NCBI GenBank assembly: GCA_020184695.1
Contig: JAANOX010000234.1
Span: 21,455-85,454 of the forward strand
Length of the DNA stretch: 64,000 bases
Reading direction: 5' to 3'
Source of the DNA: Histomonas meleagridis 2922-C6/04-290x
Lineage: Eukaryota; Protista; Parabasalia
Shown: piece by piece, positions 2,337 to 26,927 of the stretch
How positions within the stretch are numbered: position 1 is the stretch's first letter
Layout: each line of letters starts with the position of its first letter
Program-made: the position numbers and the translations under genes
Notes under the pieces: generated by a model
Database searches by the model: none
What the model was told of the DNA's origin: nothing
Seen by the model: the letters and a program-made list of their open reading frames with translations, nothing else

Positions 2337-4025
2337 ATGGATGAAAACTATCCCCTAAAACCTCTCATTTTTGACTTTGAACCACTTTATTGTAACTCAA
2401 GATTTAGTGATTTTTCCATAGTTATTCCAAATTTACAATCATCTCAATTTAGAATCCCAGTCCACCGATTCATTTTAGACTATTTTTCAAATTATTTTCA
2501 TAATTTTTTTATATCAATGCCTGAAGAAAAAGAAGTTTGTATTTGTTTGCCTGATTGGGCTGTTGAAAATATATATCCGATTTTGAAATATATGTATACT
2601 TTGAAACCAATTGAAATCAATGAAGAAAATATTTCAGGAATTTATCGAATTTCAACTTTATGGTCAATTCCAAGTATTTTACAACAATGTACTGATTTCA
2701 TTTCTGGAAATAAATTAAGCCCATTAGCTTCATTAGAAATTCTTAGCAAATTAGGAAACCAATTCCTTGACAGCTCAAAAACATTAGATATTCTTATTGA
2801 TATCGTTTATAAAAACATTGGCTCGCTAGATTGTTCTTATTTTTCAAATCTTAATTTTAATATTTTCCATCAAATTGCCAAGCGCGCTTATGTCAATCGT
2901 CCTGATTCTGCCCAAATTGGCTCTTTATGTGATATAATTGAAAGATACATAACTGATAATTCTTCTAAAATCGGAAACTATCAATTTGAAATACTTACTA
3001 AAATGTTTTCAATGAAGACGCATCACAATGGTATTATTTCACTTTATAATATAGGTACAATCAAAGATTGGAATTGCAAATATTGTATTTCTAAAATCAT
3101 TCATTATTGGCGTCACCTTGATCAGAACAAACTTAGTATGCTTCCTGTCACATATCTTTCACCTCTTTTACATGAGAGTTGTTTAAATGCAGCGAGTGAA
3201 GATGAAATATACAATTTTATTTTACTTGTTCATAAAAACCAACCAAATGAACCAATTGATTTATTATTCAATGAAGTTCGAGCAGATCTAATGTCACAAA
3301 ACTATATTAAACAATTTCTTGAATCCGAAATAGTTCCTATTCAATGTAAACAATCACTTGACCTTCAATGTTCTTTACCAAGAAAAATACCAAAAAGTAA
3401 TGTACGATGTTTACTATTAGGAGCATGTGATAATGAAGCACTTGAAGATGTCAAATTAATGTTTATAAATTGTTCACTTCCACATGTTGTAACGGTCCGC
3501 GCCGATAAAGAGTTTAACGTTAATTTTTCTGAGTTTAATTCAATTTTTGTGTTTGGGTTTTATAAATTTTGGAATCCAGATAAGTTAAGTAAAGATTTAT
3601 ATGATTTCCTTAAAAATGGTGGTGGAGTAATGATGGGACTTGGTGCAATTAGATCAGATGATTTTGGTATAGGTGAACCAATGAAATCAATTTTACCATT
3701 TGAATTAATCGAAAAAAATCCTATCGAATGCTGCCATTTTCTTAAATTAGAAAAGAAGTTAAAAGTAACTGCTGGTAGTAAAACAGCAAGATTAATGATT
3801 AGAGCAAAAGGAGAAGCATATCAATTAGTTTGGGATGATGGCATACCATTTATTATCAAAAAGAAAGAAGTACCTAAAGAAGGTATTGTTGCTGTGTTGA
3901 ATGCATTACCATTTAGTAGTAAGATAATTGATGGCCAATGGGATAGAACAAATAAAGCTATAACTCGACATATTGTGAAAACAATTGTTATGATAGCCTC
4001 AACAATTAGAATTGATAAATGTTAA
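2337..4025 (+). CDS. BTB/POZ-BACK domain protein with a C-terminal alpha/beta domain
   Basis: FSDFSIVI...IPVHRFILDYFSNYF (BTB), ASEDEIYNFIL...LFNEVR (BACK-like); 562-aa ORF. Confidence 0.8.
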   Translation: MDENYPLKPLIFDFEPLYCNSRFSDFSIVIPNLQSSQFRIPVHRFILDYFSNYFHNFFISMPEEKEVCICLPDWAVENIYPILKYMYTLKPIEINEENISGIYRISTLWSIPSILQQCTDFISGNKLSPLASLEILSKLGNQFLDSSKTLDILIDIVYKNIGSLDCSYFSNLNFNIFHQIAKRAYVNRPDSAQIGSLCDIIERYITDNSSKIGNYQFEILTKMFSMKTHHNGIISLYNIGTIKDWNCKYCISKIIHYWRHLDQNKLSMLPVTYLSPLLHESCLNAASEDEIYNFILLVHKNQPNEPIDLLFNEVRADLMSQNYIKQFLESEIVPIQCKQSLDLQCSLPRKIPKSNVRCLLLGACDNEALEDVKLMFINCSLPHVVTVRADKEFNVNFSEFNSIFVFGFYKFWNPDKLSKDLYDFLKNGGGVMMGLGAIRSDDFGIGEPMKSILPFELIEKNPIECCHFLKLEKKLKVTAGSKTARLMIRAKGEAYQLVWDDGIPFIIKKKEVPKEGIVAVLNALPFSSKIIDGQWDRTNKAITRHIVKTIVMIASTIRIDKC

Positions 4026-4209: not shown

Positions 4210-7200
4210 TCATTTCCTTCGAACTTTAGCCATAGCAGCTAACAAATCATTCTTCGGTGGGATTGGCATTCCAGTAGCACCTTTAGGTCTAACAGGACCA
4301 CCTTCTTCTAATTCCTTCATCATATTATCAAGAACACCTCTCTTAGAGAGACTCTTCTTTTGAGCTGCTTCAGCCTGTCTCTTTTGTTTCTCTTCGAGTG
4401 CCTTTTGTTTATCAATATCATCTTTAGCCCTTGCGAAATCGTTTGCAAAATCTTTCCAAATTTGTAAGAAATCGTTTAATTTTGTAGCTTTAGGATCTTC
4501 AGCATACATTGAACAAACTTCTTCATATAACATATTAACTTCTTTAATTCCATCTTTACCTTTAGTAAATACTTGTGAAGCCTTTTCTTCAAATTCGATA
4601 AACTTAGGATGAAATAGATCACCTTTAACAACGAGTTTTTCTGCCATTGGTAAAAAGTTTTTACATTTATTAAATGTACCATTTAATCCCATTAATTGCT
4701 TATTAATTATATCGATATCGAATCTTAAACAACTCTTAAACACTTCCATTTCTTCAACGAATTTAGCAGCTTCTGGATATTTCTCATAAATTGTTGATAC
4801 TAAATAATGTAATAATGTATATCCTGGCTTATTACTTCTAATATCTTTTAATTTTGCAAGTGTTTCTAATTTAAATCCATAAGCTCCACCTCTAATTGTA
4901 CCTCCATTTAAGTAATTACCAATCTTTAATATGACTGTCATTACTTTCTTTAAGTTTTCTGACTTTAATAATATTTGTAATGCATCCATGAAAAGATTTA
5001 ATGGTGGTAATATATCTTTAACTTGTTGATCAAATGTTTGTCTAAGTAACATTAATTCAAAATGAACCGGGAAATTAACAACTGTTATTAATTGTGTAAA
5101 GAATTGTTCACAAACTCCAAGTTGATTTCGATCTCCTTCAAATCCTTGAATCAATTGAACTTCATCTGGTGTCGGCTGATTACTAATCATTCCATGAAGT
5201 TGATCTTCAGTAAATATATCATCGATTTGAATGATATGTTTGGTAATATCTTGATAAGACATTTTAAGTCTTGATAATAAGATAGCAATTGACTTAGCTT
5301 TGTTTTGATCAATTAATTCAATCGTAGGAGGCTTAACTGGTGCTGATGTAATAGATTCTGTTGAAGCTGTTGTAGATATCTTTTTAGCTGGCGCTACTGT
5401 TGCAAATAAGTCTAATATCGAATCTTCGTCAATTGATATTGTACTATCATCAATATCATTCCAGATTGTAGGCTTGATTTGGGCATCAGGAAGTTTAGCC
5501 CAGAAAATAGACTTAACCTTCTTAGGCGGCGCTGGATTCGGTTTAGGAGGCATACCGAAAGCTGGTGGAGGAGGTGCGCCTGGTGGTGGGGGAGGAGCTC
5601 CAGGAGGTGGCGGAGGTGGAGGCGGTGCACCTGGCGGCGGTGGGGGCGGTGGAGGAGGAGGAGCACCTGGAGGAGGAGGTGGTGGGGGCGGTGGAGGTGG
5701 TGGAGGAGGAGGTTCAAGTGAAGCGCCACCTGGTGGAGGTGGAGGCGGAGGAGGTGGGGGCGGTGGGGGCGGTGGGGGCGGTGGAGGAGGAGCACCATCA
5801 CCAGAATCACCGCCAGAACCTATTCTTGATTCGGCTTCAGTAAGTTTCGTCTGAAGTGTTTCCTTTTCATCCTCTAACTTGGAAATTGTTTCTTTAAGTT
5901 CTTTAACAGTTTCATTCAACTTATTAATTTGCTCATTATTATCATTACTATTATTACTATCATTCGAATCTTTAACTTCAGCTTTAATAGGAATATCTTT
6001 AGTAGCTTCAACTTGAATTGACTTTTGATTTAATTCCTTAATTTCTTCTTTAAGTTTTTCAATTTCTTCATTTAACTTATCGATTTGCCTTTCAGCTTCT
6101 TTAACTTTATTCTTTTCAGCTTCAATTTGGTTATTTGACTTTTGAGTATGATCAGAAAGTTCCTTCTTAAGTTTCTGCGTTTCATCAGTTAACTTAGCGA
6201 CAGTTTCCTTTAATTTCTTAGATTCAGCCACAGACATTGTTGAATGTGTCTTTAATTCAGCGATTTCTTTCTTCTGTCTTGTAATTGTTGATCTAAATGT
6301 TAATTCATCAGCAGTATAATTAATGATTTTTTCGTTAAGTTTTGCAATTTCTTCATTCAAATTAGCAATTTGATCATTTAACTCATCAATTTTCGCAGAT
6401 TTATCATCAGATTCTTCAGAACTATTTTCACTTTCTTCATTATCATTATCACCAGAAGATTTCTCTGATTCATTATTTGATGATTCATTATCTTCTTCAT
6501 TATCACTTGAAGATGATGATGATGATGAAGATGAACCATTTTGTTCTTCATCATCATCAGAAGACTTTTGCTTAAGGTTTTCTATGTCATCCTTTAACTT
6601 ATTAATTTGTTCTTCATAATCTTCAATTTGTTTATTCAGGATATCAATTCTTCGCTTTTGTGCTTCAATTTCTTCTTTAGATGAATCGATAGCAGACAAA
6701 TATTCTTCTTTAAGTTTCTCTGAAGTAGTTCTCATTTCATCTTCTTTAGACTTATAACTTTCTAATTCAATCTTAAGATCTTCTAATTTCTCTTCTAATT
6801 CAGCTTTAGTTTCTTTAGAATCTTTATATTTCTCTTTAACTTTATCTAATTTCTCTTGAAGTTCATCTCTTTCATCTTCAATTTCTTCTAATTCTTCAAT
6901 TCTTTCTTTAGAGATTTTATATTTCTCTCTATATTTCATTTGTAATTCTTTAGATTCCTTCAAAGCATTTTTGAATTTCGTTAATTCATTATTCAAATTC
7001 TCTACTTCCGAATTATTATTACGTTGACTTTCAAGTTCTTTCTTTAAGTTCTCAATTAAATTCTTTGATTGATCTAATTCATCACATAACGTTTGAGCCT
7101 TTTCTCTAAGTCCTTGAACTACACCTTTCTTCTTATTCATTTTAGTTTCATATTTACCAATTTCTTCTTCAAGTTTCTTATTTCTTTCAGTTAATATTAC

Positions 7201-8658
7201 CATATCTTTCTTATTTGTTTTTGTAGATTCCTTTAATTTGTTATATTTATCTGTTACTTCATCCTTAGCATTAGTAATAAATTCACAATGTTTTTGTAAT
7301 GCATTAATTTGTTCTTTTAATGTATGGATCTCTGTTGAATTTTCTTTAGATTGAGAAGAACTTTTACCACCGAAATTATTAAATAGTTTGGCAGGCATTA
7401 TAGAATCAGCTAAATAATTATGATCTAGAAATTGTGTTTCTTCATATAATTGTTGATGAAATGAATCTAATGGTATTGAATTACTTTCAGTTAAATATAA
7501 TTGATACCCTTTTTCACATGTCGCAGCTTGAAATGCTGCTTCTGATAACGAAAGGTTCATTCCCTTAGCTAAGTATTGACGATATATGATTAATAAGTTC
7601 GATAGAAACATATATACATTTGACTTCTTCTTGGGATATGTTAACGCAATATCCATCAATGAAAGGTTGATCAAGTTAATGTACTTTGATGCATGTTTAA
7701 CAAGATATTTACGAACGGATTTATCGTTGAACGGATTATACATTTTCTTTGAATGTGGAAACGTTTCATGTAATGGTTTTAATTCTTGTTCAATATATTC
7801 GAACAAATTCTTTCGAGCTTGAAATGCACGTTCAGCTTCAGTTAATTTGATTGATGATAATGTCTTTAAGATGTTGTTTTGGGTGATCATTATCAAATAG
7901 TCAACACGACTTTTGACATCTTGAAATCCGGAGATCATAGCACTGAGAAAGATAATTATTTGACGAACTGTAAGTGAGTCCGGATTGGATTTGCAGACGC
8001 TTTTGATTGCAGAATACGCATCTTTACTTGACATAAGTTTTGCATTGTGATTATGATCAGTTGAATAATAGATAAATGGAACTAACAACACAAGGATATA
8101 CCCAAAGGCTTTGGAGCTCTTGACTTGAAAAGAATTGACCAAAAAGAAAAATAGATTTTTCTCGGATAACATCTTCTTTTGACCGACGTCAACGTTAGCA
8201 ACGGCATGAAGACATTGGAGTACAACGGTGAATAGTTCCATATCATTACTCTCTTTAAATTTCGATAAAAGAGAAATAAGAAATGATAAACCGTTGTTCT
8301 CGACAAATCGTTCAAGCCATGAAACTTTGCCTGTGCTTAGGTTAACACGTAATGAGTTTAGCGCTTTGAGGGCTGTACTTTGATCTTTCTCCAGGTTCAA
8401 TGTTTTTAAATACTCGAGAAAACACTCTGGTGACGGAGAGTTGGAATCGAAGTACGCTTGGCCCTGGATGAACTGCCATTGCTTCTTTGGTGTGAATTGG
8501 GCCATTTTTGCAATTGTTTCATCTGATAATCCCATGTCGTTAATGAGAGAGTCGAATAATTCTTTGAGTTTTTCCCCTTTCGGACATTCCTGCTGTAAAT
8601 CTAATTGCCGGAAAGGAACAAATAGTTCCTTTGGGACGATTTGGGATTGTCCGCTCAT
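4210..8658 (-). CDS. Diaphanous-related formin (GBD/FH3, long coiled coil, FH1, FH2, DAD-like tail)
   Basis: SLRVNLSTGKVSWLERFVENNGL (GBD/FH3), poly-Pro FH1, KKVKSIFWAKL and ILKIGNYLNGGTIRGGAYGFKLETL (FH2), GVLDNMMKEL (DAD-like). Confidence 0.95.
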   Translation of the reverse strand: MSGQSQIVPKELFVPFRQLDLQQECPKGEKLKELFDSLINDMGLSDETIAKMAQFTPKKQWQFIQGQAYFDSNSPSPECFLEYLKTLNLEKDQSTALKALNSLRVNLSTGKVSWLERFVENNGLSFLISLLSKFKESNDMELFTVVLQCLHAVANVDVGQKKMLSEKNLFFFLVNSFQVKSSKAFGYILVLLVPFIYYSTDHNHNAKLMSSKDAYSAIKSVCKSNPDSLTVRQIIIFLSAMISGFQDVKSRVDYLIMITQNNILKTLSSIKLTEAERAFQARKNLFEYIEQELKPLHETFPHSKKMYNPFNDKSVRKYLVKHASKYINLINLSLMDIALTYPKKKSNVYMFLSNLLIIYRQYLAKGMNLSLSEAAFQAATCEKGYQLYLTESNSIPLDSFHQQLYEETQFLDHNYLADSIMPAKLFNNFGGKSSSQSKENSTEIHTLKEQINALQKHCEFITNAKDEVTDKYNKLKESTKTNKKDMVILTERNKKLEEEIGKYETKMNKKKGVVQGLREKAQTLCDELDQSKNLIENLKKELESQRNNNSEVENLNNELTKFKNALKESKELQMKYREKYKISKERIEELEEIEDERDELQEKLDKVKEKYKDSKETKAELEEKLEDLKIELESYKSKEDEMRTTSEKLKEEYLSAIDSSKEEIEAQKRRIDILNKQIEDYEEQINKLKDDIENLKQKSSDDDEEQNGSSSSSSSSSSDNEEDNESSNNESEKSSGDNDNEESENSSEESDDKSAKIDELNDQIANLNEEIAKLNEKIINYTADELTFRSTITRQKKEIAELKTHSTMSVAESKKLKETVAKLTDETQKLKKELSDHTQKSNNQIEAEKNKVKEAERQIDKLNEEIEKLKEEIKELNQKSIQVEATKDIPIKAEVKDSNDSNNSNDNNEQINKLNETVKELKETISKLEDEKETLQTKLTEAESRIGSGGDSGDGAPPPPPPPPPPPPPPPPPPPPGGASLEPPPPPPPPPPPPPPPGAPPPPPPPPPPGAPPPPPPPPGAPPPPPGAPPPPAFGMPPKPNPAPPKKVKSIFWAKLPDAQIKPTIWNDIDDSTISIDEDSILDLFATVAPAKKISTTASTESITSAPVKPPTIELIDQNKAKSIAILLSRLKMSYQDITKHIIQIDDIFTEDQLHGMISNQPTPDEVQLIQGFEGDRNQLGVCEQFFTQLITVVNFPVHFELMLLRQTFDQQVKDILPPLNLFMDALQILLKSENLKKVMTVILKIGNYLNGGTIRGGAYGFKLETLAKLKDIRSNKPGYTLLHYLVSTIYEKYPEAAKFVEEMEVFKSCLRFDIDIINKQLMGLNGTFNKCKNFLPMAEKLVVKGDLFHPKFIEFEEKASQVFTKGKDGIKEVNMLYEEVCSMYAEDPKATKLNDFLQIWKDFANDFARAKDDIDKQKALEEKQKRQAEAAQKKSLSKRGVLDNMMKELEEGGPVRPKGATGMPIPPKNDLLAAMAKVRRK
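5530..5800 (-). repeat. GC-rich poly-proline (FH1) coding tract
   Basis: Runs of ggt/gga/ggc/ggg on the plus strand; source of several shadow ORFs. Confidence 0.9.
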
Positions 8659-11391: not shown

Positions 11392-11700
11392 ATGAAATAC
11401 ATTGCTGCATACCTTCTTGCCCAAGCCGGTGGTGATGCTTCCCCATCCAAAGAAAAGATCACAGCAATTCTCGAAAGTGTTGGAATTCAAGTTGATGCAA
11501 AGGCAATTGATGCTCTTCTTGAAAAATTAAATGGCAAGAACATCGAAGAACTCATCAAGGAAGGATCATCTAAATTAGCTGTTGTTGGTGGAGGTGCTCC
11601 AGCTGCTGCCGCTACAACTGCAGAAGTCAAGGAAGAAGAAAAGAAAGAAGAAGAAGAAGTTGTTGAAATGACTGGTGGCTTCGATGATCTCTTTGACTAA
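11392..11700 (+). CDS. RPLP2: 60S acidic ribosomal stalk protein P2
   Basis: MKYIAAYLLAQAGG, ITAILESVGI, LNGKNIEELIKEGSSKLA, Ala-rich hinge, acidic tail ending DDLFD. Confidence 0.96.
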   Translation: MKYIAAYLLAQAGGDASPSKEKITAILESVGIQVDAKAIDALLEKLNGKNIEELIKEGSSKLAVVGGGAPAAAATTAEVKEEEKKEEEEVVEMTGGFDDLFD

Positions 11701-11811
11701 GTTCATAAAACATTCATCCCATATTATTTTTATCTTTTAATTATTTCAAATTAAGCTCTTTCATCAAAGAACGTTAAGATTATCTATCGTTGGTACGTTT
11801 ACAATTTTAAA

Positions 11812-14800
11812 ATGGTGGACGTAACACCAAAAATAAACAAAACACAACAAACTTATGATACATTTATTGCATCCCCATCTTCTCGAATGGAATCGCCATT
11901 TGTCAATGTTCGTGAATATCAACAAAATGTTGCAAATTTAGAAAATGAAATATTCACATTAAAAATTCTTTTATGGCAATTAGACAGAAAAAATAGATCA
12001 TTTTTGAAGTCAAATAATGTTTCAGAAGATGTGATTGCAAAACTAATTGAACAAGAAAAAACAATTGCAAAATTAAATTCTGAAATTGGAAATAACAATA
12101 AAGATGGTAACACACTAAGTGGAAGACAATCACCTACGTTAAAAAGACAATTACAAGATGCTTTAGATGATAATATTCGTTTGCAGAAAAAACTTCAACA
12201 AAAAGAAAAACAAGAATTATTATCTGCAACTGAAAGTTCTTCTATGTTAGATAAAGGTGCTCAACTTTCTATTGATAATGTTGAACTTCGATCTCAAGTT
12301 GAAACATTAAATGCCGAAATATCAATTCTTCGTGAAGAAATAGAAAAGCTTAAACAAGAGAATGAAACATTAAAATCAAATTCCAATAATATATCAAATG
12401 AACTTAACAATAAGATTAATGATCTTCAAAATCAGAACAAAGATTTAAATAATCAAATAGATGAACTTAACAAAACTATTACCAAACTAAAAACAGAAAA
12501 TGAAAGTTTGCAAAACGAAAATGATGATCTTAATCAAACAATTAATGATTTAAGAGATGAGTTAGACAAACTTAAGCAAGAAATTAAAAGTAAAGATGAC
12601 TTAGTAAAGACTAAAGATGACGAAGCACGTGCTTTAAATCTTCAATTAAACCAACTTCAAAAAGATAATTCAACAATTATGCTCACATTGAACATTGATA
12701 ATTTCAATGAAGTCATAACTAAAATCAAAGATCTTGAAGCAGACAATGAATTCCTAAAGAACCAAAATGAAAAACTTGGAAATGCTATCGAAAGTGCTGA
12801 ATCACAAATTGATAAATATAAAAATATTATTGACGAAAAAGAAAAAGACAATGATAGTATTGAGTTCCTTCAAACAGAGAATTTGCAGTATAAAGAACAA
12901 ATTAAAGAAGCATTAAAAGAAAATGAAGAACTTAAAAAACAAATTAATGAATTACAAAAAACAAAAAGTGGATCACCGAATAATAGTTTAGTAAAAGACA
13001 ACTCAAGAATTGAGAAATTAGAAAAAGAAAACCAAAAATTGAAGAAACAAAATGAAGAATTACATCAACAAATTGATAATTTGCAAAAATCATCTTCAAT
13101 ACTTAATAGCCGAAGTTTACTTCGAGATAATTCACAAATACAAAAATTAAAGAAAGAAAATGAAGAACTTAAAAAGCAAAACGAAGAATTACATCAACAA
13201 ATTGATAATTTACAAAAATCTTCTTCGTTATTAAGTAGTAGAAGTACAACTAAAGACAACACACAAATTAGGAAATTAAAGAAAGAAAATGATGAACTTA
13301 AGCAACAAAAAGAAGAATTACTTCAACAAATTGATGAACTTCAAAAATCTTCTTCATTATTAAGTAGTAGAAGTATCACTAAAGATAATACACAAATTAG
13401 GAAATTAAAGAAAGAAAATGATGAACTTAAGCAACAAAAAGAAGAATTACTTCAACAAATTGATGAATTGCAAAAATCCTCTTTATTAAAGAGTAACATT
13501 TCTATTGATGAAATTTCACAAATACAAAAATTAAAGAAAGAAAACGAAGAACTTAAACAACAAAAGGAAGAATTAAGGCAACAAATTGATAATTTACAAA
13601 AATCTTCTTCATTATTAAGTAGTAGAAGTAAAACCAAAGAAAATACTCAAATTAAGAAATTAAAGAAAGAAAATGATGAACTTAAGCAACAGAAAGAAGA
13701 ATTACTTCAACAAATTGATGATTTACAAAAATCCTCTTTATTAAAGAGTAATAACAATAGTTCAATTAGAAGCAATTCTCAAATTCAAAAATTGAAGAAA
13801 GAAAATGATGAACTTAAAAAGAAAATCAATAATTTACAGAAAAATAATGAAAACAATTCAAAATCATTAGATGACACACAAATAATTGCAAGTATTTCAA
13901 GTAGTATTTCACAACCTAATAATTATTATGAACTTATGAAAAATTATCAACAAATCATCAAAGAAAATGAAGAGCTTAAAGACAAAATTAAAGAACTACA
14001 AGAAGGTAATACTGAACTTGCAAGTAGTGAAATGTTTGATGAAGAAACTTCACAACTAAAGAAGAAATATCAAACTTTGTTAAATGAAAATAAAGAACTT
14101 GAAAATGAAGTCAAAATATTAAAAGAAAATAATTCTTCAAATAATAATTCTAAATTTGAAGAAATGGAACATTCACAAATGAAGAAACAAATACAAAAAT
14201 TAATGGAAGAAAACCAAATTTTAATTAAGCAAATTAAACAACTTAAAGAAAAAAATAGTTTTGATGAACAATCACGAAGTTATCAACCAAAAGATTTTAG
14301 TAAAAGTATGAATTCATTTATTGAAAATGCTAAAATAAAAGAATTACAAAAACAAAATAAAGAATTAAAAGAACAACTTGAAAGCATTCAAGAAAAATCT
14401 AAAAATAATTATATTGAAAAATATAATTTGTTATTTGAGCAATCATGTAAATTAAGTTTGAGACAAGAAGAATTTAAACAATATATTGATAATATTTCAA
14501 AGAATAAATTTGATTATAACATACAAATTTCATCAGAAATGTTATCTTCTCCTTTAAATACTAATTCACCTGTTGCGATAATTAAAAGTAGAGTTAAAAA
14601 CTTAAAAGATAAAAATCAAAAAATTAATAATGATCTTGAGCAATTACAAAATGAATTTGTTGATAAAGCATTTGAAACTTTATGTAAACAAGAAAATAAA
14701 ATTAATTCATTAAATTCATCAAATAATAAACTAAAAGAAAAAATTAACGAATTACAAAATCAAATTTTAATTATACAATCAGAAAATATTGAGTTAGTAA

Positions 14801-16374
14801 ATGAAAATGATAAACTTCATTTAAACTCAAAGAACAATGAAAAAGTTATTAATCTACAAACACAAATACAAAATTTACAAATTAAAAATAAAGAACTTAT
14901 TCAAGAAAATGAAGAAATGAAAGAACAAATTGAAACAAATCAGCAACAAATTGAAAAACTTAATGAAAATAATATTAAATTATCAAATAATATTAAAACT
15001 TTACGTTCTTCACAAGATAAAAATTCGAATCTTAATGAAAATCAAATTAAAGAGTATAAAAATCAAATCGAAATTTTAACAAAAGAAAATACTAATTTAT
15101 CAAATCAAATAACAAAACAATTAACATCACTAAAAAGAAATGAAACATTAATTAATGAGCTTCAACAACAAATTGAAATTCTTAAAAACGAAAATACTGA
15201 TTTAGTAAATGAAAATGATTTACTTCGTATAAATAATAACAAAAATAATAAAAATAATAAAAATAATTCTTCATCAATACAAACGAAAGAAGAAATTAAA
15301 CAACTCCAAATGCAAATTGAAATAATAAATAATGAAAAAAATGATTTAATAAAAGAAATCGATCGATTAAATGCACAAAATAAACAACAAAATGTTGATT
15401 TTAAAGATCAAATCCAAACACTTCAAACCAAGAATAAAAGTCTTTCAAGTGAAATTACATCATTAAAAGTACAAATTTCTTCATTTGTTTCACCAATTAA
15501 AAATAATAATAATAATTTTGATAAAAATCAAATTAATGAATTAAAGCAAAAAATTTCATTACTTGAAGAAGAAAATAAAAGATTAAAACAAACAAAAACT
15601 GTTCTTGGAAGTCCACATCAACAAGAACAAATCCTTGAAGATCAACAACAAATTGAAATACTTCTAAAAGAAAAACAAGTTTTAACCAAACAAATTATAG
15701 TTATAAAGCAATTTATTAATAAAAACATAAAAACTTTATTCCAAAATCTTTATAAACAAAATGAAAAAATTAAATCAGAATTTGAAGAATTTAAAAATAT
15801 TTGTAAACAAATGTTTGAAGATATTAAAAAAGCAGCGATGATATGTATACAAAGTTCAATTAAAATTAATAAAATATATTCAAAAGCGCCATTAACTCGT
15901 GAAGAACGTAAAAGAATAACAATAATACAACAAAAATGGAATAGTAAAGTAAGTAAAAGTCTTGCTCATTTCATTGATGAAGAAAATGAAAAAAGTTTTC
16001 TAAACGCAAATGTTTCAAAAGTTACAAATATAAATGGAAATAGTTTTATATATTTACAATGCCAAAGATTAATAAATTCAATTTGGAGCGCATTTGGAAA
16101 TAAATCTGGTGAAGAACCAAAAATAACTGAAATTAAGTCAACGAAAGAAATACAAAAAATTATTACAAATGTTGTAAAGATGCAACATATTGGCGTGATT
16201 AACTTACAGAGTCAAATAGAAGATTTAGAAGAAAAAGGCGATGGATTGAATCCTAAAATTTCGGGTTTAATTTCTAATTTCAAAAAAGAAGTGCGGACTT
16301 ATAGAACTGTTTTACATAATGACCATCAGCAATTGATGTTAGCTATATCTACCAAAGAAAATGAATTTTTGTAA
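11812..16374 (+). CDS. Giant coiled-coil protein with an N-terminal centrosomin motif 1 (CM1/gamma-TuNA)-like segment
   Basis: 1520-aa heptad-rich ORF. Residues 31-59 NVREYQQNVANLENEIFTLKILLWQLDRK align without gaps to the CM1 consensus. Confidence 0.7.
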   Translation: MVDVTPKINKTQQTYDTFIASPSSRMESPFVNVREYQQNVANLENEIFTLKILLWQLDRKNRSFLKSNNVSEDVIAKLIEQEKTIAKLNSEIGNNNKDGNTLSGRQSPTLKRQLQDALDDNIRLQKKLQQKEKQELLSATESSSMLDKGAQLSIDNVELRSQVETLNAEISILREEIEKLKQENETLKSNSNNISNELNNKINDLQNQNKDLNNQIDELNKTITKLKTENESLQNENDDLNQTINDLRDELDKLKQEIKSKDDLVKTKDDEARALNLQLNQLQKDNSTIMLTLNIDNFNEVITKIKDLEADNEFLKNQNEKLGNAIESAESQIDKYKNIIDEKEKDNDSIEFLQTENLQYKEQIKEALKENEELKKQINELQKTKSGSPNNSLVKDNSRIEKLEKENQKLKKQNEELHQQIDNLQKSSSILNSRSLLRDNSQIQKLKKENEELKKQNEELHQQIDNLQKSSSLLSSRSTTKDNTQIRKLKKENDELKQQKEELLQQIDELQKSSSLLSSRSITKDNTQIRKLKKENDELKQQKEELLQQIDELQKSSLLKSNISIDEISQIQKLKKENEELKQQKEELRQQIDNLQKSSSLLSSRSKTKENTQIKKLKKENDELKQQKEELLQQIDDLQKSSLLKSNNNSSIRSNSQIQKLKKENDELKKKINNLQKNNENNSKSLDDTQIIASISSSISQPNNYYELMKNYQQIIKENEELKDKIKELQEGNTELASSEMFDEETSQLKKKYQTLLNENKELENEVKILKENNSSNNNSKFEEMEHSQMKKQIQKLMEENQILIKQIKQLKEKNSFDEQSRSYQPKDFSKSMNSFIENAKIKELQKQNKELKEQLESIQEKSKNNYIEKYNLLFEQSCKLSLRQEEFKQYIDNISKNKFDYNIQISSEMLSSPLNTNSPVAIIKSRVKNLKDKNQKINNDLEQLQNEFVDKAFETLCKQENKINSLNSSNNKLKEKINELQNQILIIQSENIELVNENDKLHLNSKNNEKVINLQTQIQNLQIKNKELIQENEEMKEQIETNQQQIEKLNENNIKLSNNIKTLRSSQDKNSNLNENQIKEYKNQIEILTKENTNLSNQITKQLTSLKRNETLINELQQQIEILKNENTDLVNENDLLRINNNKNNKNNKNNSSSIQTKEEIKQLQMQIEIINNEKNDLIKEIDRLNAQNKQQNVDFKDQIQTLQTKNKSLSSEITSLKVQISSFVSPIKNNNNNFDKNQINELKQKISLLEEENKRLKQTKTVLGSPHQQEQILEDQQQIEILLKEKQVLTKQIIVIKQFINKNIKTLFQNLYKQNEKIKSEFEEFKNICKQMFEDIKKAAMICIQSSIKINKIYSKAPLTREERKRITIIQQKWNSKVSKSLAHFIDEENEKSFLNANVSKVTNINGNSFIYLQCQRLINSIWSAFGNKSGEEPKITEIKSTKEIQKIITNVVKMQHIGVINLQSQIEDLEEKGDGLNPKISGLISNFKKEVRTYRTVLHNDHQQLMLAISTKENEFL
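12995..13830 (+). repeat. About 129-bp (43-aa) coding tandem repeat, 6 full copies plus 1 partial
   Basis: Unit KDNTQIRKLKKENDELKQQKEELLQQIDELQKSSSLLSSRSIT; adjacent unit starts at 13252 and 13381. Confidence 0.9.
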
Positions 16375-17008: not shown

Positions 17009-18865
17009 TTACTTTTCATATTTCTCTTCCATGTTAATCATTGGATCAGTCATAAATTTTATTTTATCATTTTCCTTCTTCTTTCTTGTTATCACACACA
17101 CAACAATGATTCCGATCACTACTACTGCCGCTCCGACAGATAATCCGATTGTCAAGCCCTTTTTAAATTTCATTATAACGTCATCATGCGGACATTCGTT
17201 GAGAATTTCGTTCTTCTTAACGAATTTATCACAGAAGAATCCTCCTTCGTAAGAATGCGCCACCATTACTTTTTCGATTTTATTATCACTTCCAAATCCT
17301 GGTGAAGATGTACCATAATAATATACACATTTTAAGTTAATGCACTTAATAAATGCATAATATCCAATATAACGAACATTTTCTCTGATAATCAAATTGA
17401 CCAAATTTTTAGCATTAGCAAATGCTCGATTTGCAATTTTAGTAACAAAAATTGGTGTTTCTAATGTTTCGTCAGTAATTAATGGTGGATAACGAATTAT
17501 TGTTGAATGATTTTTATTCCAAAGTATTACATCGCCATTTAAATTGGAAAAAACCGGATTTTCTTCAGATACTTAAATGGATAATATATTGTTGCATGAT
17601 TCAAATGCTTTTGATTCAATTGTTGTTAATGATTTGGATATTGTAATATATGTTAAATTTATACAATTATAAAATGCTTTGTCTCCAATAAATTGTACAT
17701 TTGGCCCAAGTGTTAATTCTCTTAAGCCTTCACATTCATAAAATGCATAAGGTCCAATATTTTGTAGATTCGTTCCAAGTGTTAATTCCTTTAATTTTTC
17801 ACATAAACTAAATGCATTTATTTCAATTATTTGTACACTTTCACCTAAAGTAACTTTCTCTAAATTGTGACATTTCATAAATGAACGTTCGCCAATCGTT
17901 TTAACATTATCACTAATTATAACTTCTCTTAAACTTTTACAATAATAAAATGCTTCTTCATCAATTCTTTCGATTCCTTTTCCAAATTGAACCGTTTCTA
18001 AATTTAAACATTGAATAAATCCTCTTTTATAAATTGCTTTAACTGAATCTGGAATAATAATATTTATTAAGTTACATCCCTCAAATAAACTTTCCCCAAT
18101 GAATGTAAGTGAATTAGATAATTTAACATATGTTAAATTTGAACAGCCAAGAAATGTATTGTTGCCAATTGTGGTCACTGAATCTGGAATTGTGATATTA
18201 TTTAACAGTTTACAATCTGAAAATGCTGATTCGCCAATAGTTTTTAATTGATTACCAAATTCAATTTTTTGTAATAAACAAGATTTAAAGGCTCCGAGTC
18301 CTATCGATTTGACTGAGTTTGGAATTCGAACTTCTTTGAGACCTGAATAAGTAAATGTGAATTGTTCAATGATTTCAATACCTTCAGAGATGTTAATTGT
18401 ACTGAGAGAAGCACATAATGCAAACGCAGTACGACCAATTGACGTTACTGTGGTTGGAATTTTGATATCAGTCAAATGAGCGCAAAGAGAAAAAGCTTTT
18501 GGGCTAATGGTTTGGAGACTTTGACCTAATTCAATATTTTCGAGGAAATTACAAAAGCAGAATGCGCCAGTTCCAATGAAGGTGACTGATTGTAGATAAA
18601 CTTTTTTTACAGTAGAGCTTGCAAATGATTCATTTCCAATCGTTGTAATTGTTGATCCACACTTGATTGTCTCTAATTTCATCCAGCTGTAAAATGATTG
18701 TTCTGGAATAGTTGTAACATCATCGGCAAATTGAAGTGTTTTTGTATCATTTTTATATTCCTTGTAAGTTCCTTTCTCGAGATCAGTAAGATTAACGATT
18801 AAGGTTCCATTTTCTTTAAAGAATTCTTGGTAAGAGAAAAAAAAGAAAAAAGAAAAAAGCAACAT
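17009..18865 (-). pseudogene. BspA-like (TpLRR/LRR_5) surface protein, one gene interrupted by a single in-frame TAA at 17573-17575
   Basis: Signal-like N-terminus and many xIPxSVxxIGxxAFxxC repeats. Reading through the TAA gives ILSI*VSEENPVFSNLNGDVILWNKNHSTIIRYP..., in frame (168 nt) with the 17009..17404 ORF that carries the TM helix and RKKK. Confidence 0.85.
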
Positions 18866-20680: not shown

Positions 20681-21808
20681 TTATTTATATTTTTTAAACT
20701 TATTTGAAATGTGTGTTTCCACTTTATTTTTCGCAGTTATAATTTGGTAGTCGCCATTTTCTTTCGTGTATTTACTACTTCCGTTTGGAAACAGAACATA
20801 TTTATCTCCGTTGGGAAAATGCGCTTCTTTTTGACCACTTGGAAAGTCAATAACAACTGTACTATCAGGGAGCGTGAGTTCAATCGCACCAGTGTTAGCA
20901 AAAAAGTACGCAACAGCTCCATCATCGAATTCTTTAAGTATATCACCGTTGTTATAAAATATAAAAATGTTCGAATCCGTACGAATTTTACAAGTTCCAT
21001 TCCTAAATTGCACAACAACATCCCCGTTGGGGTATCGTATCTCTTTCCCATGAGGTGATTTGATACCTTCACCTATTGGATGATAATCAAAATTAATGTC
21101 ATAATCATAATGAGGTATTGACAATCGTTCAAATTGTACACTTTGTTCTTCTAAATCATTTGTTTGGTGATTTATACTTTTTTGTGGAGATGAATCATCT
21201 TCAATTATTGGTTCTTCCATAATGGGCTTTATAGGGGAAGTTGGTGAAACTTCGGGAGAAATTGATTTTTTCTGCTTAGTAGGAGTACTAAATTGAGATA
21301 TTGTTAACTTTAAGGAATCATTTTTTTCTTTTTGAAGTTGCAGAGTATTAATTAAACGTTGCTTCTCAGATTTCCATAAATCATTTTCTTCTTTGTATTT
21401 TAATTCCAATGCTTTCTTCTTTTCAAGTAATTCTCTTATTGTCATTTTTGAAACTTGGATATCGGCCATTTCTTCTTGGGTTTGTGAGTCTTGCTTTTCC
21501 CTTTTAGTTCCTTTTGGCTTTGATTTTCCTATTTCTGATCTGAAAAATTGTAATTGATTATTAAATTCATTTTTATCCTTTTCAAATTGTTTTCTTTGAA
21601 TTTCTATTTCATTTTTTTCATTTCTTAATATTATGTTTTGTTTTTTGATTTCTTCCTGTTGTTTTTTAAGTTCATCAAGTTTTTGTTTTAATTCTTGAAA
21701 TGATTTTTTAAATTCTTTTAGCTGCATTTCAGTCACCTCGTATGTTTTTGGCTCAGGTAATTTCCATTGTATTTCTTCTTCGTTATTTGATTCTTCTTCA
21801 AAGCTCAA
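20681..21808 (-). CDS. SAS4: SAS-4/CPAP/CENPJ-like protein (coiled coil plus Tcp10_C/G-box domain); start codon unresolved
   Basis: C-terminal repeats YPNGD, FRNGT, YNNGD, FPSGQKEAHFPNGDKYVLFPNGS are typical of the TCP domain. The ORF opens with TTG; first in-frame ATG is codon 28. Confidence 0.8.
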   Translation of the reverse strand: MSFEEESNNEEEIQWKLPEPKTYEVTEMQLKEFKKSFQELKQKLDELKKQQEEIKKQNIILRNEKNEIEIQRKQFEKDKNEFNNQLQFFRSEIGKSKPKGTKREKQDSQTQEEMADIQVSKMTIRELLEKKKALELKYKEENDLWKSEKQRLINTLQLQKEKNDSLKLTISQFSTPTKQKKSISPEVSPTSPIKPIMEEPIIEDDSSPQKSINHQTNDLEEQSVQFERLSIPHYDYDINFDYHPIGEGIKSPHGKEIRYPNGDVVVQFRNGTCKIRTDSNIFIFYNNGDILKEFDDGAVAYFFANTGAIELTLPDSTVVIDFPSGQKEAHFPNGDKYVLFPNGSSKYTKENGDYQIITAKNKVETHISNKFKKYK

Positions 21809-22697: not shown

Positions 22698-25600
22698 TCA
22701 TTCTTCAAATTCACTTGACTCATCATCAGATGTTGTTTCAGAAGATTCGTCATCATCAGAATCTTTCGAAGCAGCCTTTAACATTTCTGCAATATTTGTT
22801 TGTTTCATTGAGGCTGCTCTTGGCTTATAATTACTTGCTATGGATGATGAGCCGAAGTCAGATGATGAATCATCAAGTTCTATATCTGAGTCTGAATCCT
22901 CAAATGCAGTGCTCTTCTTTGTTGTGCTTCTTTTAGATGTTGTTGTTGCTGTAGGTTTCTTTGTTTCTTTCTTTACTTCCTTTTTAACAGGCGCTTTTTT
23001 CTTAGGCTCTGCTTTAGATTTCGTTACGCGTGGCTTCCGTTCTTTCTTTACTGGAGCTGCCTTCTTTTCATTAGTATTATTTGCGTCTACTTGTGCATCG
23101 ACATCTGCTTTATTTGCACCTGCTTGTGAATCATTCTCTTGTGTTGGTGGTGTTACTTTAGGCTTTCGTTTACGTTGTGTAATTTTAACAGTAGATTTAC
23201 TCTTACGTTTAGATCGAAGGACATCTTCTATTTGTGTTTGACGTTTTGCTTCTCGTTCTCTTTCGAATTTCTCATATTCTGCTTCAAACTCTTCTAGATC
23301 TTCAAGCCACATTTGAGTTGGCTGTTTTTCCATCATACGTTGCATACTTTCTTGTGTTTGTTCTTTTTCTTTAAGTAATTTATGAAAACGTTCTTGTGTA
23401 AGAGTAGAAATTTTCATTGATAAAAGATAATTATAACCTTTACGTAATGTGTCAATTTCTGTATCATTTTGATCTAATTGTTCTTCTTCTTCATCATTAT
23501 TACCACCTGTATCAATTACATCATCTGCAACTTTCTTAGGAATATTACCTTTAGTTTGATATAAATCATATTTACGTGCTTTTAAGTTAAGTAATATTGT
23601 CTTTTGTGGTATATTCCTAAGTTCAATAACTCCTTCAATAAACTCTTTAATGAAACGTGCTTGATTTGAGATATGTACAACTGCTATACGTAAATCTTCT
23701 AATATAGCCGTTTTACGTTCTTCATATAAACTAAGTCGAACATCATAAAAATCATTAAGAATTTCTTCTGGTGAATGATATTGTTTAATACGACCTTCTG
23801 GATCAAATAAGGTCATATTCGATTCTTTAAGTGATTTAGATAATTTAAAGAATTTCTCAATTCCAATTGTTTTAATATGTTCCATTTGATCTTCATTAAC
23901 ATATACATCAAAATCAACAGTATTATTTGTAGAATTATCTCGAATATCACTAATTAATGGTTCGAATTTAACTGGTTTTTCAGGTTCATCTGTTTTCTTC
24001 TTTCTACCTCTAGAAGTTGTAGATGTAGCTGTACCTTGTGAAGCTTTACCTTTAGTTTTATCTTTCTTTTCTTTAATACCTTCACCTGTAATTAATGATT
24101 CTAAAAATGATTTATATTTATTTGTCCATACTTCAATAGGTAATTCTGTAATTGATATCATTTCAGATGTAACTTCTTTAGCTATACCTTTAACCATATA
24201 AGTTGAACCTTCATCTTTATTTTGTCCAACTTTCTCTATTGTACCTGTAAATCCAGAATACCATGGAATCATTGGTTCTAATTCTTCACCATTAATTTTA
24301 CGTTTAATATTTGCTACGATATCTTTAGGATTATAACATGGGACATTTGAACTCCAACCTACACCTATACCATTTGAACCATTAACTAAAACCATTGGTA
24401 TAATTGGTACATAATATTTAGGTTCAATTGGTATACCTTCATCTGTAAGATATTCTAATAATTGATCATCATCTTTATGAAAGATTTTTCTTGTGATTGG
24501 TGATAAACGTGTATAAATATAACGTGGCGCACCTGCATCTGTACCTCCTTTAAGTCTTGTACCAAATTGACCTTGTGGTACAAATAAATTAATATTATTA
24601 CTCCATACAAATGATTGTGCCATAGCTGTAATTGTTTGATTTAATGAATCTTCTCCATGATGATAAGCAGATTGTTCAGAAACTTTACCTGCAAGTTGGA
24701 CTACTTTAAGATCTTTGTTAATTTTATTCTTAAGTGATACCCATAATACTTTTCTTTGACCTGGTTTAAGTCCATCTATTACTGAAGGGATTGCACGGAC
24801 ATTTGCATAATTACTAAATAAGATAAGTTCTTTATCAACAAAATCTTTATATGTAACTGTTGGCGTATCTTGACCTAAATATGTAGTAGCTGGATCTAGA
24901 TTTGCTAACCATTGTTTACGATCATCTGCTCTTTTCTTTGAAAATGCTAATTGAATACATTCTTCATCATCTTGATTTTGATATTTAAAATAAATTCGAT
25001 GTTTTTTCATATTTGAAAAATATTCTTTAGTTTCATCATCATCTGATGTAGCCAAACCTTTATAATATTTAATTGCATAACCTCTACCATCATTATGTTC
25101 TTTTTTCCATGCTATAAATTCTGGTAATGTATAAAATGCTATAGGCTTTTCTTTACCTTTTGTAACTTTAACTATAGGTGTAATAAATTCACATAAAAAT
25201 TTAGGTCTTTTAAGTAATGAAGGCCACATTGAATGAATAAAATTAATAATTAATCCTTTGATATGTGAACCATCTTGATCTTGATCAGCCATAATCATAA
25301 TTGAACCATATCGTAATTCTTTTAATGATTCTGCATCATCATATTTTTTACCTGGTTTTAATGCCATAATTTTCATGATGTTTTGGATTTCAGCATTCTT
25401 AGCTAATTTTGCTGCTGATATATCACGTGTATTTAATAATTTACCTCTTAATGGAAATACTCCAAAGTAATCATGTCCTACAACAGATACTCCAGTTACT
25501 GCCATACCTTTAGCAGAGTCTCCTTCTGTAAGAATTAATGTACATTCTGATGATTTAGCTCGTCCTGCTTCATTTGCATCTGTAAGTTTTGCCATACCAT

Positions 25601-26858
25601 AAATTTTAGCTTGTTTCTTACCACCCATTTTTTGCATTGTACTATTTTCTTTATATTTTGCATATTCTCGAATGTAACCGGGGATTTCTGTCTTCATTAA
25701 TTTCTTTAAGAAGTTTTCTGGTATATCACATTTACTACCAAATTCTTTCACTGGTAATGTTAATGTTTCTTTTGTTTGTGAATCAAAACTTGGATTTTCA
25801 ATTAATGAATTAACAAATACAAATAAAAATTGTTTTGCCATATTCGTCTTAATTGAAACTTTGTTTGATCCTTTAGAAAGTTCTTGTACAAAAAATTTGG
25901 TAATTTGATTAGTTACTAAATCTACATGTGTACCACCTCTAATTGTAGATACTGCATTAACAAATGAAATTTGTTGAAATGATTGATCAGGTGATGCTGC
26001 TACTGCTATTCTCCAACGTGGATTAACTTCACATTGAATTAATGTCGCGCCTTCAGGTAAAAATAATTTACAATATTCTTCCCATGAACGAATTGGTGTA
26101 CGTGAATTATTTAAATAAACTGCACATCCTTTAAGAACACCGGCCATATCCCAAACACGTCGTGTTAATAGAGATATAATATCATCATCTAACCTATCCA
26201 TATGAAATAATGATACATCTGGATAAAACTTAATAAGTGTTGATGTCTTGGGATTCCCACTTAACTTTTTGATTTTAGGTTTGCCAATGTTTTCCATATG
26301 ATCTGTGAATTCTTGGGTGTATTTATAAAATTGACCTGTGCTAGGATCTGTTGAAACACATTCGACAATGAATCGTGTTGAATAGATATTGGTAAGCTTG
26401 GCACCAAAGCCATTACGACCACCAGTAACACGCTTCTCTTCATCATTGAAGTTAGATGAAGTTAATAAATTCCCGAAAATAAATTCTGGAATCCAATATT
26501 TCTTATCTTCCTTCTCAACATATTTCTCTTCAATTGGAATTCCTTTGCCATCATTCCAAACACTAATGTATCCTTCATCAGGATTGATTTCAACTTTGAT
26601 TGTTTTTGTTGGAGGTTGTCTTTGACAGTTATCTGCTGCATTAACAAGAATTTCATCAAATATCTTGTATAAACCAGGTACGTAAGTGATTTCACGGTAA
26701 TTCATCTTGCCATCATCGACAACCCATATTGGTTGTGTTGTTGCAGCTTTAGAGCCAATGTAACTTTCAGGCCTTTTAAGAATGTGTTCTCTAAGGTCTA
26801 ACTTCTCGTAGTCCTCTTTGGAACCTACAGACATTGGTTCAGAGTCTTGACTGCTCAT
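22698..26858 (-). CDS. TOP2: DNA topoisomerase II (likely start ATG 26858)
   Basis: EHILKRPESYIGS, FDEILVNAADN, TGGRNGFGAKL, LTEGDSA, PLRGKLLN, DGLKPGQRK, YHHGE, PRYIYTRL. Confidence 0.97.
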   Translation of the reverse strand: MSSQDSEPMSVGSKEDYEKLDLREHILKRPESYIGSKAATTQPIWVVDDGKMNYREITYVPGLYKIFDEILVNAADNCQRQPPTKTIKVEINPDEGYISVWNDGKGIPIEEKYVEKEDKKYWIPEFIFGNLLTSSNFNDEEKRVTGGRNGFGAKLTNIYSTRFIVECVSTDPSTGQFYKYTQEFTDHMENIGKPKIKKLSGNPKTSTLIKFYPDVSLFHMDRLDDDIISLLTRRVWDMAGVLKGCAVYLNNSRTPIRSWEEYCKLFLPEGATLIQCEVNPRWRIAVAASPDQSFQQISFVNAVSTIRGGTHVDLVTNQITKFFVQELSKGSNKVSIKTNMAKQFLFVFVNSLIENPSFDSQTKETLTLPVKEFGSKCDIPENFLKKLMKTEIPGYIREYAKYKENSTMQKMGGKKQAKIYGMAKLTDANEAGRAKSSECTLILTEGDSAKGMAVTGVSVVGHDYFGVFPLRGKLLNTRDISAAKLAKNAEIQNIMKIMALKPGKKYDDAESLKELRYGSIMIMADQDQDGSHIKGLIINFIHSMWPSLLKRPKFLCEFITPIVKVTKGKEKPIAFYTLPEFIAWKKEHNDGRGYAIKYYKGLATSDDDETKEYFSNMKKHRIYFKYQNQDDEECIQLAFSKKRADDRKQWLANLDPATTYLGQDTPTVTYKDFVDKELILFSNYANVRAIPSVIDGLKPGQRKVLWVSLKNKINKDLKVVQLAGKVSEQSAYHHGEDSLNQTITAMAQSFVWSNNINLFVPQGQFGTRLKGGTDAGAPRYIYTRLSPITRKIFHKDDDQLLEYLTDEGIPIEPKYYVPIIPMVLVNGSNGIGVGWSSNVPCYNPKDIVANIKRKINGEELEPMIPWYSGFTGTIEKVGQNKDEGSTYMVKGIAKEVTSEMISITELPIEVWTNKYKSFLESLITGEGIKEKKDKTKGKASQGTATSTTSRGRKKKTDEPEKPVKFEPLISDIRDNSTNNTVDFDVYVNEDQMEHIKTIGIEKFFKLSKSLKESNMTLFDPEGRIKQYHSPEEILNDFYDVRLSLYEERKTAILEDLRIAVVHISNQARFIKEFIEGVIELRNIPQKTILLNLKARKYDLYQTKGNIPKKVADDVIDTGGNNDEEEEQLDQNDTEIDTLRKGYNYLLSMKISTLTQERFHKLLKEKEQTQESMQRMMEKQPTQMWLEDLEEFEAEYEKFEREREAKRQTQIEDVLRSKRKSKSTVKITQRKRKPKVTPPTQENDSQAGANKADVDAQVDANNTNEKKAAPVKKERKPRVTKSKAEPKKKAPVKKEVKKETKKPTATTTSKRSTTKKSTAFEDSDSDIELDDSSSDFGSSSIASNYKPRAASMKQTNIAEMLKAASKDSDDDESSETTSDDESSEFEE

Positions 26859-26927
26859 TTTAAAAACTGGCCAGGAATTAATAAACGGAAACAACCGTCA
26901 AAAATTATTTCACTTGGCTTTTGACAA

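Follow-up and report, generated by a model that had tools for sequence, protein, structure and literature searches.

How might parabasalids, whose spindle-pole scaffold is poorly known, attach gamma-tubulin complexes to their microtubule-organising centres (MTOCs)? The question is raised by a gene in a 64,000-nucleotide stretch of the Histomonas meleagridis 2922-C6/04-290x genome (contig JAANOX010000234.1, positions 21,455 to 85,454; here called the window, in whose own numbering all coordinates are given). The gene encodes a 1,520-residue protein with a CM1-like N-terminus, a long coiled coil and a conserved C-terminal domain. CM1 is an N-terminal domain of about 60 amino acids present in the proteins that tether the ring complex of gamma-tubulin (gamma-TuRC) in animals and fungi (PMC6281477). 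A sequence-only reading of the window had proposed that this protein carries the CM1/gamma-TuNA motif of the centrosomin family and is a candidate scaffold of the parabasalid MTOC or atractophore. Is the likeness due to common descent, and would such a protein still bind gamma-tubulin complexes?

Our analysis suggests that the motif is homologous to CM1, which we consider highly probable, and that the gene encodes a divergent CM1-family tether or activator of gamma-tubulin complexes, of the CDK5RAP2/Cnn/Mto1/Spc72 type, which we consider probable. The protein is a candidate MTOC or atractophore scaffold; its localisation to the atractophore is a reasonable guess. The gene and its parts are as follows.

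11812..16374, + strand: the whole CM1-like gene, from an ATG start through 1,520 uninterrupted codons, stop codon included (open reading frame list and translation)
11812..11892, + strand: leader rich in Ser, Thr and Pro, residues 1-27, predicted to be disordered (AlphaFold2 predicted local distance difference test, pLDDT, below 50)
11893..11997, + strand: CM1/gamma-TuNA-like core, residues 28-62, SPFVNVREYQQNVANLENEIFTLKILLWQLDRKNR (hhalign, top PDB match, core hidden Markov model)
11953..11955, + strand: codon TTC of F48, the counterpart of human CDK5RAP2 F75 (sequence)
11908..12102, + strand: match to Pfam Cnn_1N, residues 33-97, profile positions 2-64 of 74 (Pfam)
12136..15732, + strand: coiled-coil spacer, residues ~109-1307, rich in K, E, N, Q and L and poorly conserved (Pfam scans of chunks)
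12985..13817, + strand: tandem array within the coiled coil, 6.5 copies of a 129-bp (43-residue) unit (Tandem Repeats Finder, translation)
15733..16371, + strand: C-terminal domain, residues 1308-1520, about 210 residues, all-helical and family-specific (alignment of 15 members)

The motif and the family that carries it

The peptide singled out in the sequence-only reading (NVREY...LDRK) is present, one codon away from where it had been placed: it spans 11905-11991 and residues 32-60 of 1,520, at the N-terminus as had been claimed, whereas translation of 11902-11988 on the + strand gives VNVREYQQNVANLENEIFTLKILLWQLDR. The CM1 segment with which it had been compared occurs letter for letter within human gamma-TuNA as given in PMC9859039. 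The proposed gapless alignment, with seven identities in 29 positions and many conservative pairs, was reproduced in the same register by hhalign.

The residues that matter in CM1 are known from experiments on the gamma-TuNA of CDK5RAP2 (Rale et al., PMC9859039). Dimerisation is obligatory there and is driven by I67, L70 and L77. F75 is needed for the binding and activation of gamma-TuRC, not for dimerisation, and the F75A mutation abolishes binding. Mutation of L70, F75 or L77 weakened gamma-TuRC binding, while F63, mutated in the dimerisation test only, resembles F75 in that its replacement by alanine leaves dimerisation intact. In the hhalign register Y36, V40, L43, F48 and L50 of the window protein pair with human F63, I67, L70, F75 and L77. 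V40, L43 and L50 occupy the dimerisation positions, and F48 occupies the gamma-TuRC-binding position, so that the activating Phe is kept, as had been noticed at the outset.

Conservation falls on the same positions. M1, Y36 and L50 are invariant in an alignment of 18 N-termini, made up of the window protein and the relatives described below, and L43, F48 and S67 are conserved in at least 90% of them. The start Met and S67 aside, Y36, L43, F48 and L50 are the most constrained positions of the N-terminus, and of the five residues that were mutated in PMC9859039 they match four. The Phe equivalent to F75 is kept in 17 of the 18 members, and the NENFTLK block in which it stands is the best-conserved part of the family protein. 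An aromatic residue conserved where dimerisation has no need of it is the pattern to be expected if the binding face has been retained.

AlphaFold2, given the family alignment, leaves residues 1-27 disordered and predicts two helices, at 33-67 (pLDDT 87-95) and at 72-97, separated by a break at 68-71 (NNVS). The predicted break lies 19-22 residues past F48; in the human protein G94-P95 lies 19-20 residues past F75. A Ser/Thr-Pro dipeptide stands at residues 28-29, the start of the CM1 core, in 15 of the 18 family members, and the human sequence likewise has a Ser-Pro upstream of its motif.

The window protein is not alone. A word-index search with its N-terminus found a single orthologue, P0001 (1,181 residues, from a Logan assembly), which shows 56% identity across the first 170 residues, is conserved over the last 200 or so and can be aligned only loosely in between; the same kind of search with a Tritrichomonas foetus N-terminus found only itself. 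The wider family came from an exhaustive hmmsearch of a 78-residue N-terminal alignment against 1.84 billion representative sequences, one for each 50% cluster. This yielded 17 relatives at E <= 1e-3, 11 of them at E <= 1e-10, and in all 17 the match begins at residues 5-26 and ends by residue 105. Three are T. foetus proteins (TRFO_25367, TRFO_03423 and TRFO_06768), each annotated 'hypothetical protein', and the remaining members come from assemblies and metagenomes. These T. foetus proteins are the only named relatives, which fits a parabasalid origin of the window. The family appears to be parabasalid-wide, and its CM1-like motif goes without annotation in current databases. A named member from Trichomonas vaginalis did not turn up, which is no sign of absence, as the library searched exhaustively is nameless and holds one representative per 50% cluster.

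The T. foetus proteins share the CM1-like N-terminus of the window protein (35-46% identity over the first 120 residues or so) and its C-terminal domain. They differ from it in being 840-979 residues long, in lacking the 43-residue tandem array and in occurring as three paralogues in one species. The family consensus around the motif, SPF(I/V).VR(D/E)YQ.NV..LENENFTLKLLL, resembles canonical CM1 (KDFENQITELKKENFNLKLRIYFLEE) more closely than does the window protein itself. In one metagenome-derived member, P0015, a second and weaker CM1-like stretch of EKENYDLKMQL type was seen at residues ~141-165, about 100 residues after the first.

Evidence for and against a relationship to CM1

We compared the family with known proteins by several methods. 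A profile of the 18 N-termini, run against 177,635 distinct PDB sequences, had as its top match the CDK5RAP2 'CM1' construct of 8rx1/9smx (E 0.0022); the next matches, at E values of at least 0.05, were designed helical proteins and leucine zippers. Aligned by hhalign to the human CM1 stretch, a snippet taken from that PDB search, the family gave a probability of 90.9% and a P value of 1.2e-6 over 31 gapless columns. A hidden Markov model (HMM) of the core alone, with 35 columns from family residues 28-62, scored the human and Xenopus gamma-TuNA sequences of PMC9859039 at 18.6 and 18.9 bits. The decoys were 34,158 residues, comprising the coiled-coil remainders of all family members and the window's remaining long open frames. 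The best of them reached 14.6 bits, and this was the second CM1-like stretch of P0015; the next reached 9.4, and the coiled coil of the window protein itself 2.5. When the two gamma-TuNA sequences were shuffled 20,000 times with their composition preserved, the real scores were never attained (maximum 15.9 bits, 99.9th percentile 9.0).

The ESM Atlas, searched by protein language model with residues 20-110 as the query, gave the same answer. Its top three named clusters were all Cnn_1N (0.92, 0.91 and 0.90), the best having 181 of 256 features in common with the query, above the 170-feature mark for members of one family. Within Pfam, all 18 family N-termini match Cnn_1N at E <= 1, while any other Pfam family is matched by two of them at most. 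These tests are not fully independent, as they bear on the same 30-60 residues, but their models and null sets differ and their results agree. The CM1/gamma-TuNA reading first made from the sequence is backed by the PDB profile search, hhalign, the decoys, the shuffles, the language-model neighbours and the conservation across 18 members.

Several results weigh against it. The motif is short, with about 31 aligned columns, and it is set among coiled coils, which converge more readily than globular folds do. Searches of the PDB sequences with a single sequence or a two-sequence profile gave no CM1 chain, which only the 18-sequence profile brought up. The E-N-F of canonical CM1 and of the other family members is replaced by E-I-F in both the window protein and its nearest orthologue. 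No member of the family reaches the Pfam gathering cut-off for Cnn_1N (PF07989), which is 28.5 bits. The window N-terminus scores 17.4-20.7 bits (E 4.9e-4 to 5.3e-3), and the best member, P0004, scores 26.4 bits (E 7.7e-6). Nor is such a score specific. When the remainder of the window protein was divided into ten 120-residue chunks and scanned as a control, four of the ten matched Cnn_1N at 14-25 bits, chiefly those with the KLKKENEELK-type 43-residue repeat. The C-terminal domain, finally, has no similarity to PACT or any other Pfam family.

The Pfam result needs to be read with care. A gathering score is an operational threshold for annotation, not a biological definition, and remote members of families commonly score lower. 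In the matching control chunks Cnn_1N is one among 21-83 coiled-coil families; in the N-terminal piece it is the top match and the first of only three. The unspecific matches are due to the 43-residue repeat units, a region that scores up to 25 bits on Cnn_1N, and we rejected the Pfam match as sufficient evidence. Because generic coiled-coil chunks score alike, the sub-threshold score is not evidence when taken alone. The Cnn_1N search that had been suggested as a check on the sequence-only reading returned the expected family as the best match of the N-terminal piece, at a level below the cut-off and unspecific by itself.

Each 120-residue chunk of the spacer matches between 11 and 129 different coiled-coil Pfam families. 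The array unit is of the type KLKKENEELKQQKEELLQQIDxLQKSSSLLSSRS, with about 80% matches between copies, and the array is missing from the orthologue P0001. The C-terminal domain is common to all 15 members aligned over their C-terminal part, with the conserved blocks DRK.L..LQ.KW, Q.LIH.IW..FG.G..EP and LSP.VV.L...VR......L...H.EL. Pfam scans of these 15 domains at E <= 1 found neither PACT nor any family common to more than one member, and a PDB profile search found no meaningful match, the lone one (E 0.0015) being a de novo designed helical protein. The AlphaFold2 model has six helices with good local (pLDDT 78) and poor global confidence (predicted template-modelling score, pTM, 0.36). 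A Foldseek comparison of this model with the PDB gave nothing at E <= 0.001, and at a pTM of 0.36 structural matches would be unreliable. The Pfam, PDB and Foldseek scans gave no match to CM2 or MASC, short motifs that these libraries may not represent. By analogy with CM2, MASC and PACT, the domain may be a targeting module.

Could the protein be a lineage-specific structural coiled coil, part of the costa, the parabasal fibres or a striated root, or a golgin-like tether, whose likeness to CM1 is convergent or due to chance and which makes no contact with gamma-tubulin complexes? Large coiled-coil proteins are numerous in the parabasalid cytoskeleton, P477 among them (PMC13071381). The Cnn_1N scores below the cut-off and shared with generic coiled-coil chunks, the lack of a CM1 chain in the single-sequence PDB search and a C-terminal domain unrelated to known MTOC-targeting modules in Pfam, PDB and Foldseek searches would all fit such a protein. 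This explanation would leave it to chance that the family profile prefers vertebrate CM1 to every other PDB chain and to 34,000 residues of coiled coil of the same composition, that no shuffle reached the real score and that the embedding search ranks Cnn_1N first. It would also have to account for conserved columns that coincide with the experimentally critical residues of CM1, including the F75 position, which is not a core one, and for the canonical N-terminal position of the motif in all members. We consider it unlikely.

Even a true descendant of CM1 need not have kept its function. It might have lost the binding of gamma-tubulin complexes and be left as no more than a helix for dimerisation or partner binding, in a scaffold with some other role, as the change from Asn to Ile in the window protein and its nearest orthologue and the large divergence from the Pfam model might suggest; degenerate CM1 domains, for which such a loss has been argued, have been described in animal pericentrin (PCNT) and AKAP450 (PMC6678760). 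Against this stands the Phe that is needed for gamma-TuRC binding and not for dimerisation (PMC9859039). Since it is kept in 17 of 18 members, and the NENFTLK block is conserved more than any other part of the protein, selection on the binding face would appear to continue, and we regard a loss of binding as very unlikely. A divergent CM1-family tether or activator is the reading that we prefer.

The locus and its transcription

The CM1-like gene lies in an AT-rich region and has a G+C content of 20-25%. The strand opposite its open reading frame (ORF) is closed, being riddled with stops in translation. The orthologue (P0001/P0002) has the start context of the window gene, and its ends are conserved with it. 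The neighbouring genes are these.

2337-4025, + strand: BTB/BACK protein, an ordinary eukaryotic neighbour
4210-8658, - strand: diaphanous-type formin of 1,482 residues with GBD and FH2 domains, an ordinary eukaryotic neighbour
11392-11700, + strand: 60S acidic ribosomal protein P2-like gene of 102 residues, ending in GGFDDLFD
17573-18865, - strand: BspA-type leucine-rich repeat (LRR) protein of 430 residues with four LRR_5 stretches
20681-21808, - strand: Tcp10_C/G-box protein, putatively CPAP/SAS-4-like (Pfam Tcp10_C)
22698-26894, - strand: type II DNA topoisomerase (topoisomerase II), an ordinary eukaryotic neighbour

The P2-like gene lies upstream of the CM1-like gene, with 111 bp between the two, and serves as a comparison for its expression. 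Contigs from four runs of one study cover the CM1-like locus without a single difference. The summed contig depth is 10,000-59,000 over the P2-like gene and 4-180 over the CM1-like gene, and a poly(A) run closes one contig 26 nucleotides past the P2-like stop, which places a poly(A) site near 11726. The run records name neither RNA nor DNA; because of the roughly 1,000-fold contrast in depth and the poly(A) tail on the P2-like gene, the runs are indicated to be RNA-seq. On that understanding, the CM1-like gene is putatively transcribed at a modest level, with the proviso that the contigs give neither transcript ends nor levels and that the low depth runs on into the downstream spacer. The short-read contigs break or are mis-joined in the repeat array and at other low-complexity sites (joints 12954>14702 and 15304>12187). 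We read the joints in the repeat region as the product of faulty assembly of the low-complexity array and not of splicing.

A SAS-4 homologue had been reported about 4 kb downstream, and a gene that fits this description is there. The ORF at 20681-21808 lies 4.3 kb beyond the CM1-like stop codon and matches Tcp10_C (G-box) in two stretches (E 5.9e-14; 51.8 bits, the cut-off being 36). Its N-terminal half is a coiled coil and the two Tcp10_C/G-box stretches lie at its C-terminus, and by these C-terminal repeats it appears to be CPAP/SAS-4-like. It is short for a SAS-4, with 375 codons counted from a mechanical TTG start. Its nearness to the CM1-like gene is real, yet in a eukaryote it carries no functional weight. 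The BspA-type LRR ORF is followed on the same strand by a 131-residue ORF (17009-17404, - strand) with an LRR-like start, a transmembrane segment and a basic tail. The two may belong to a single surface-protein gene that a stop, a frameshift or the mechanical ORF calling has divided.

A possible tether and its place among known systems

If the protein is a divergent CM1-family tether or activator, its CM1 helix would form a parallel dimer through V40, L43 and L50, with F48 (and Y36) turned towards that part of the gamma-tubulin complex which GCP2/GCP3 make up. The complex would be recruited and its assembly or activation promoted. The fast-evolving coiled coil of about 1,200 residues would serve as a spacer or scaffold, and attachment to at least one MTOC, whether the atractophore or spindle pole, the basal bodies or the origin of the pelta-axostyle, would fall to the C-terminal domain. 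The conserved Ser/Thr-Pro just before the motif is a possible cell-cycle phospho-switch, as has been proposed for other CM1 proteins, although this is speculation. The partners are available in a related parasite: gamma-tubulin, GCP2 and GCP3 are all encoded by Trichomonas vaginalis (PMC7658347, PMC13071381).

The arrangement is familiar from animals. Like the window protein, CDK5RAP2/CEP215 of human and Xenopus and Drosophila Centrosomin have a disordered leader, an N-terminal CM1, a long coiled coil and a distinct C-terminal module. The window protein aligns with CDK5RAP2 and Centrosomin without a gap over 31 columns, and the CM1 of the CDK5RAP2 family is its top match in both the PDB and Pfam. 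It is unlike them in its core identity of about 24%, its Pfam score below the cut-off and the Ile in place of Asn before the Phe. A CM2-like C-terminus was not detectable in the family by the Pfam and PDB scans, and the C-terminal domain is specific to the family.

Fungal Mto1, Spc72 and ApsB, and Spc110 and Pcp1, share with the window protein the order of a CM1, a coiled coil and a C-terminal domain, which in the window protein would be a targeting domain only by inference. As in the fungal systems based on the small complex of gamma-tubulin (gamma-TuSC), the likely partner would be a complex built on GCP2 and GCP3, such as T. vaginalis encodes. Unlike Spc110, Pcp1 and pericentrin, the family shows no PACT match in Pfam scans of its C-terminal domain, and on this sequence evidence it appears to lie outside that CM1 subfamily.

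Among parabasalid proteins the obvious comparison is P477, which is reportedly far larger, its name standing for 477 kDa. It is a coiled-coil, atractophore-associated protein of T. vaginalis and the only atractophore protein named in the accessible part of PMC13071381. No CM1 is reported for it in that part of the source.

Candidates for CM1-family proteins outside animals and fungi are on record. Dictyostelium CDK5RAP2/Cep161 is one, and a Dictyostelium review gives database candidates in two further non-amorphean columns (PMC8534566). A species table for CM1 has question marks for Arabidopsis and C. elegans (PMC6281477). One review, which calls the assembly module of the pericentriolar material Amorphea-specific, nevertheless notes an apparent CEP215 orthologue in Giardia (PMC6678760). 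With the Giardia CEP215-like gene, a metamonad CM1 protein would not be unprecedented. In the literature searched we found no paper linking CM1, centrosomin or CDK5RAP2 to a Trichomonas or other parabasalid protein. What appears not to have been described before is the canonical N-terminal CM1 logic joined to a lineage-specific C-terminal domain, in a protein whose Pfam score stays below the threshold. The kind of protein is itself already well known, and the finding would extend the CM1 mechanism well beyond Amorphea.

CM1 proteins are the main known adaptors that set where and when gamma-tubulin complexes nucleate microtubules, and those characterised come from animals, fungi and Dictyostelium. 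Proteins of this kind escape annotation by falling just below the threshold of a Pfam model that generic coiled-coil signal blurs. If a parabasalid-wide CM1 family were well supported, this docking device would prove much older than the centrosome. We hold only tentatively, and with more doubt than confidence, the further proposal that CM1 docking predates the split between Metamonada and Amorphea, which would place it near the age of the last eukaryotic common ancestor, and that this family, its CM1 joined to a hitherto undescribed targeting domain at the C-terminus, is the long-sought gamma-tubulin receptor of the atractophore and extranuclear spindle pole. A CM1 family of this kind would offer a taggable way into the molecular composition of the organising centres at the atractophore, the basal bodies and the pelta-axostyle in Trichomonas and Tritrichomonas, parasites of human and veterinary importance.

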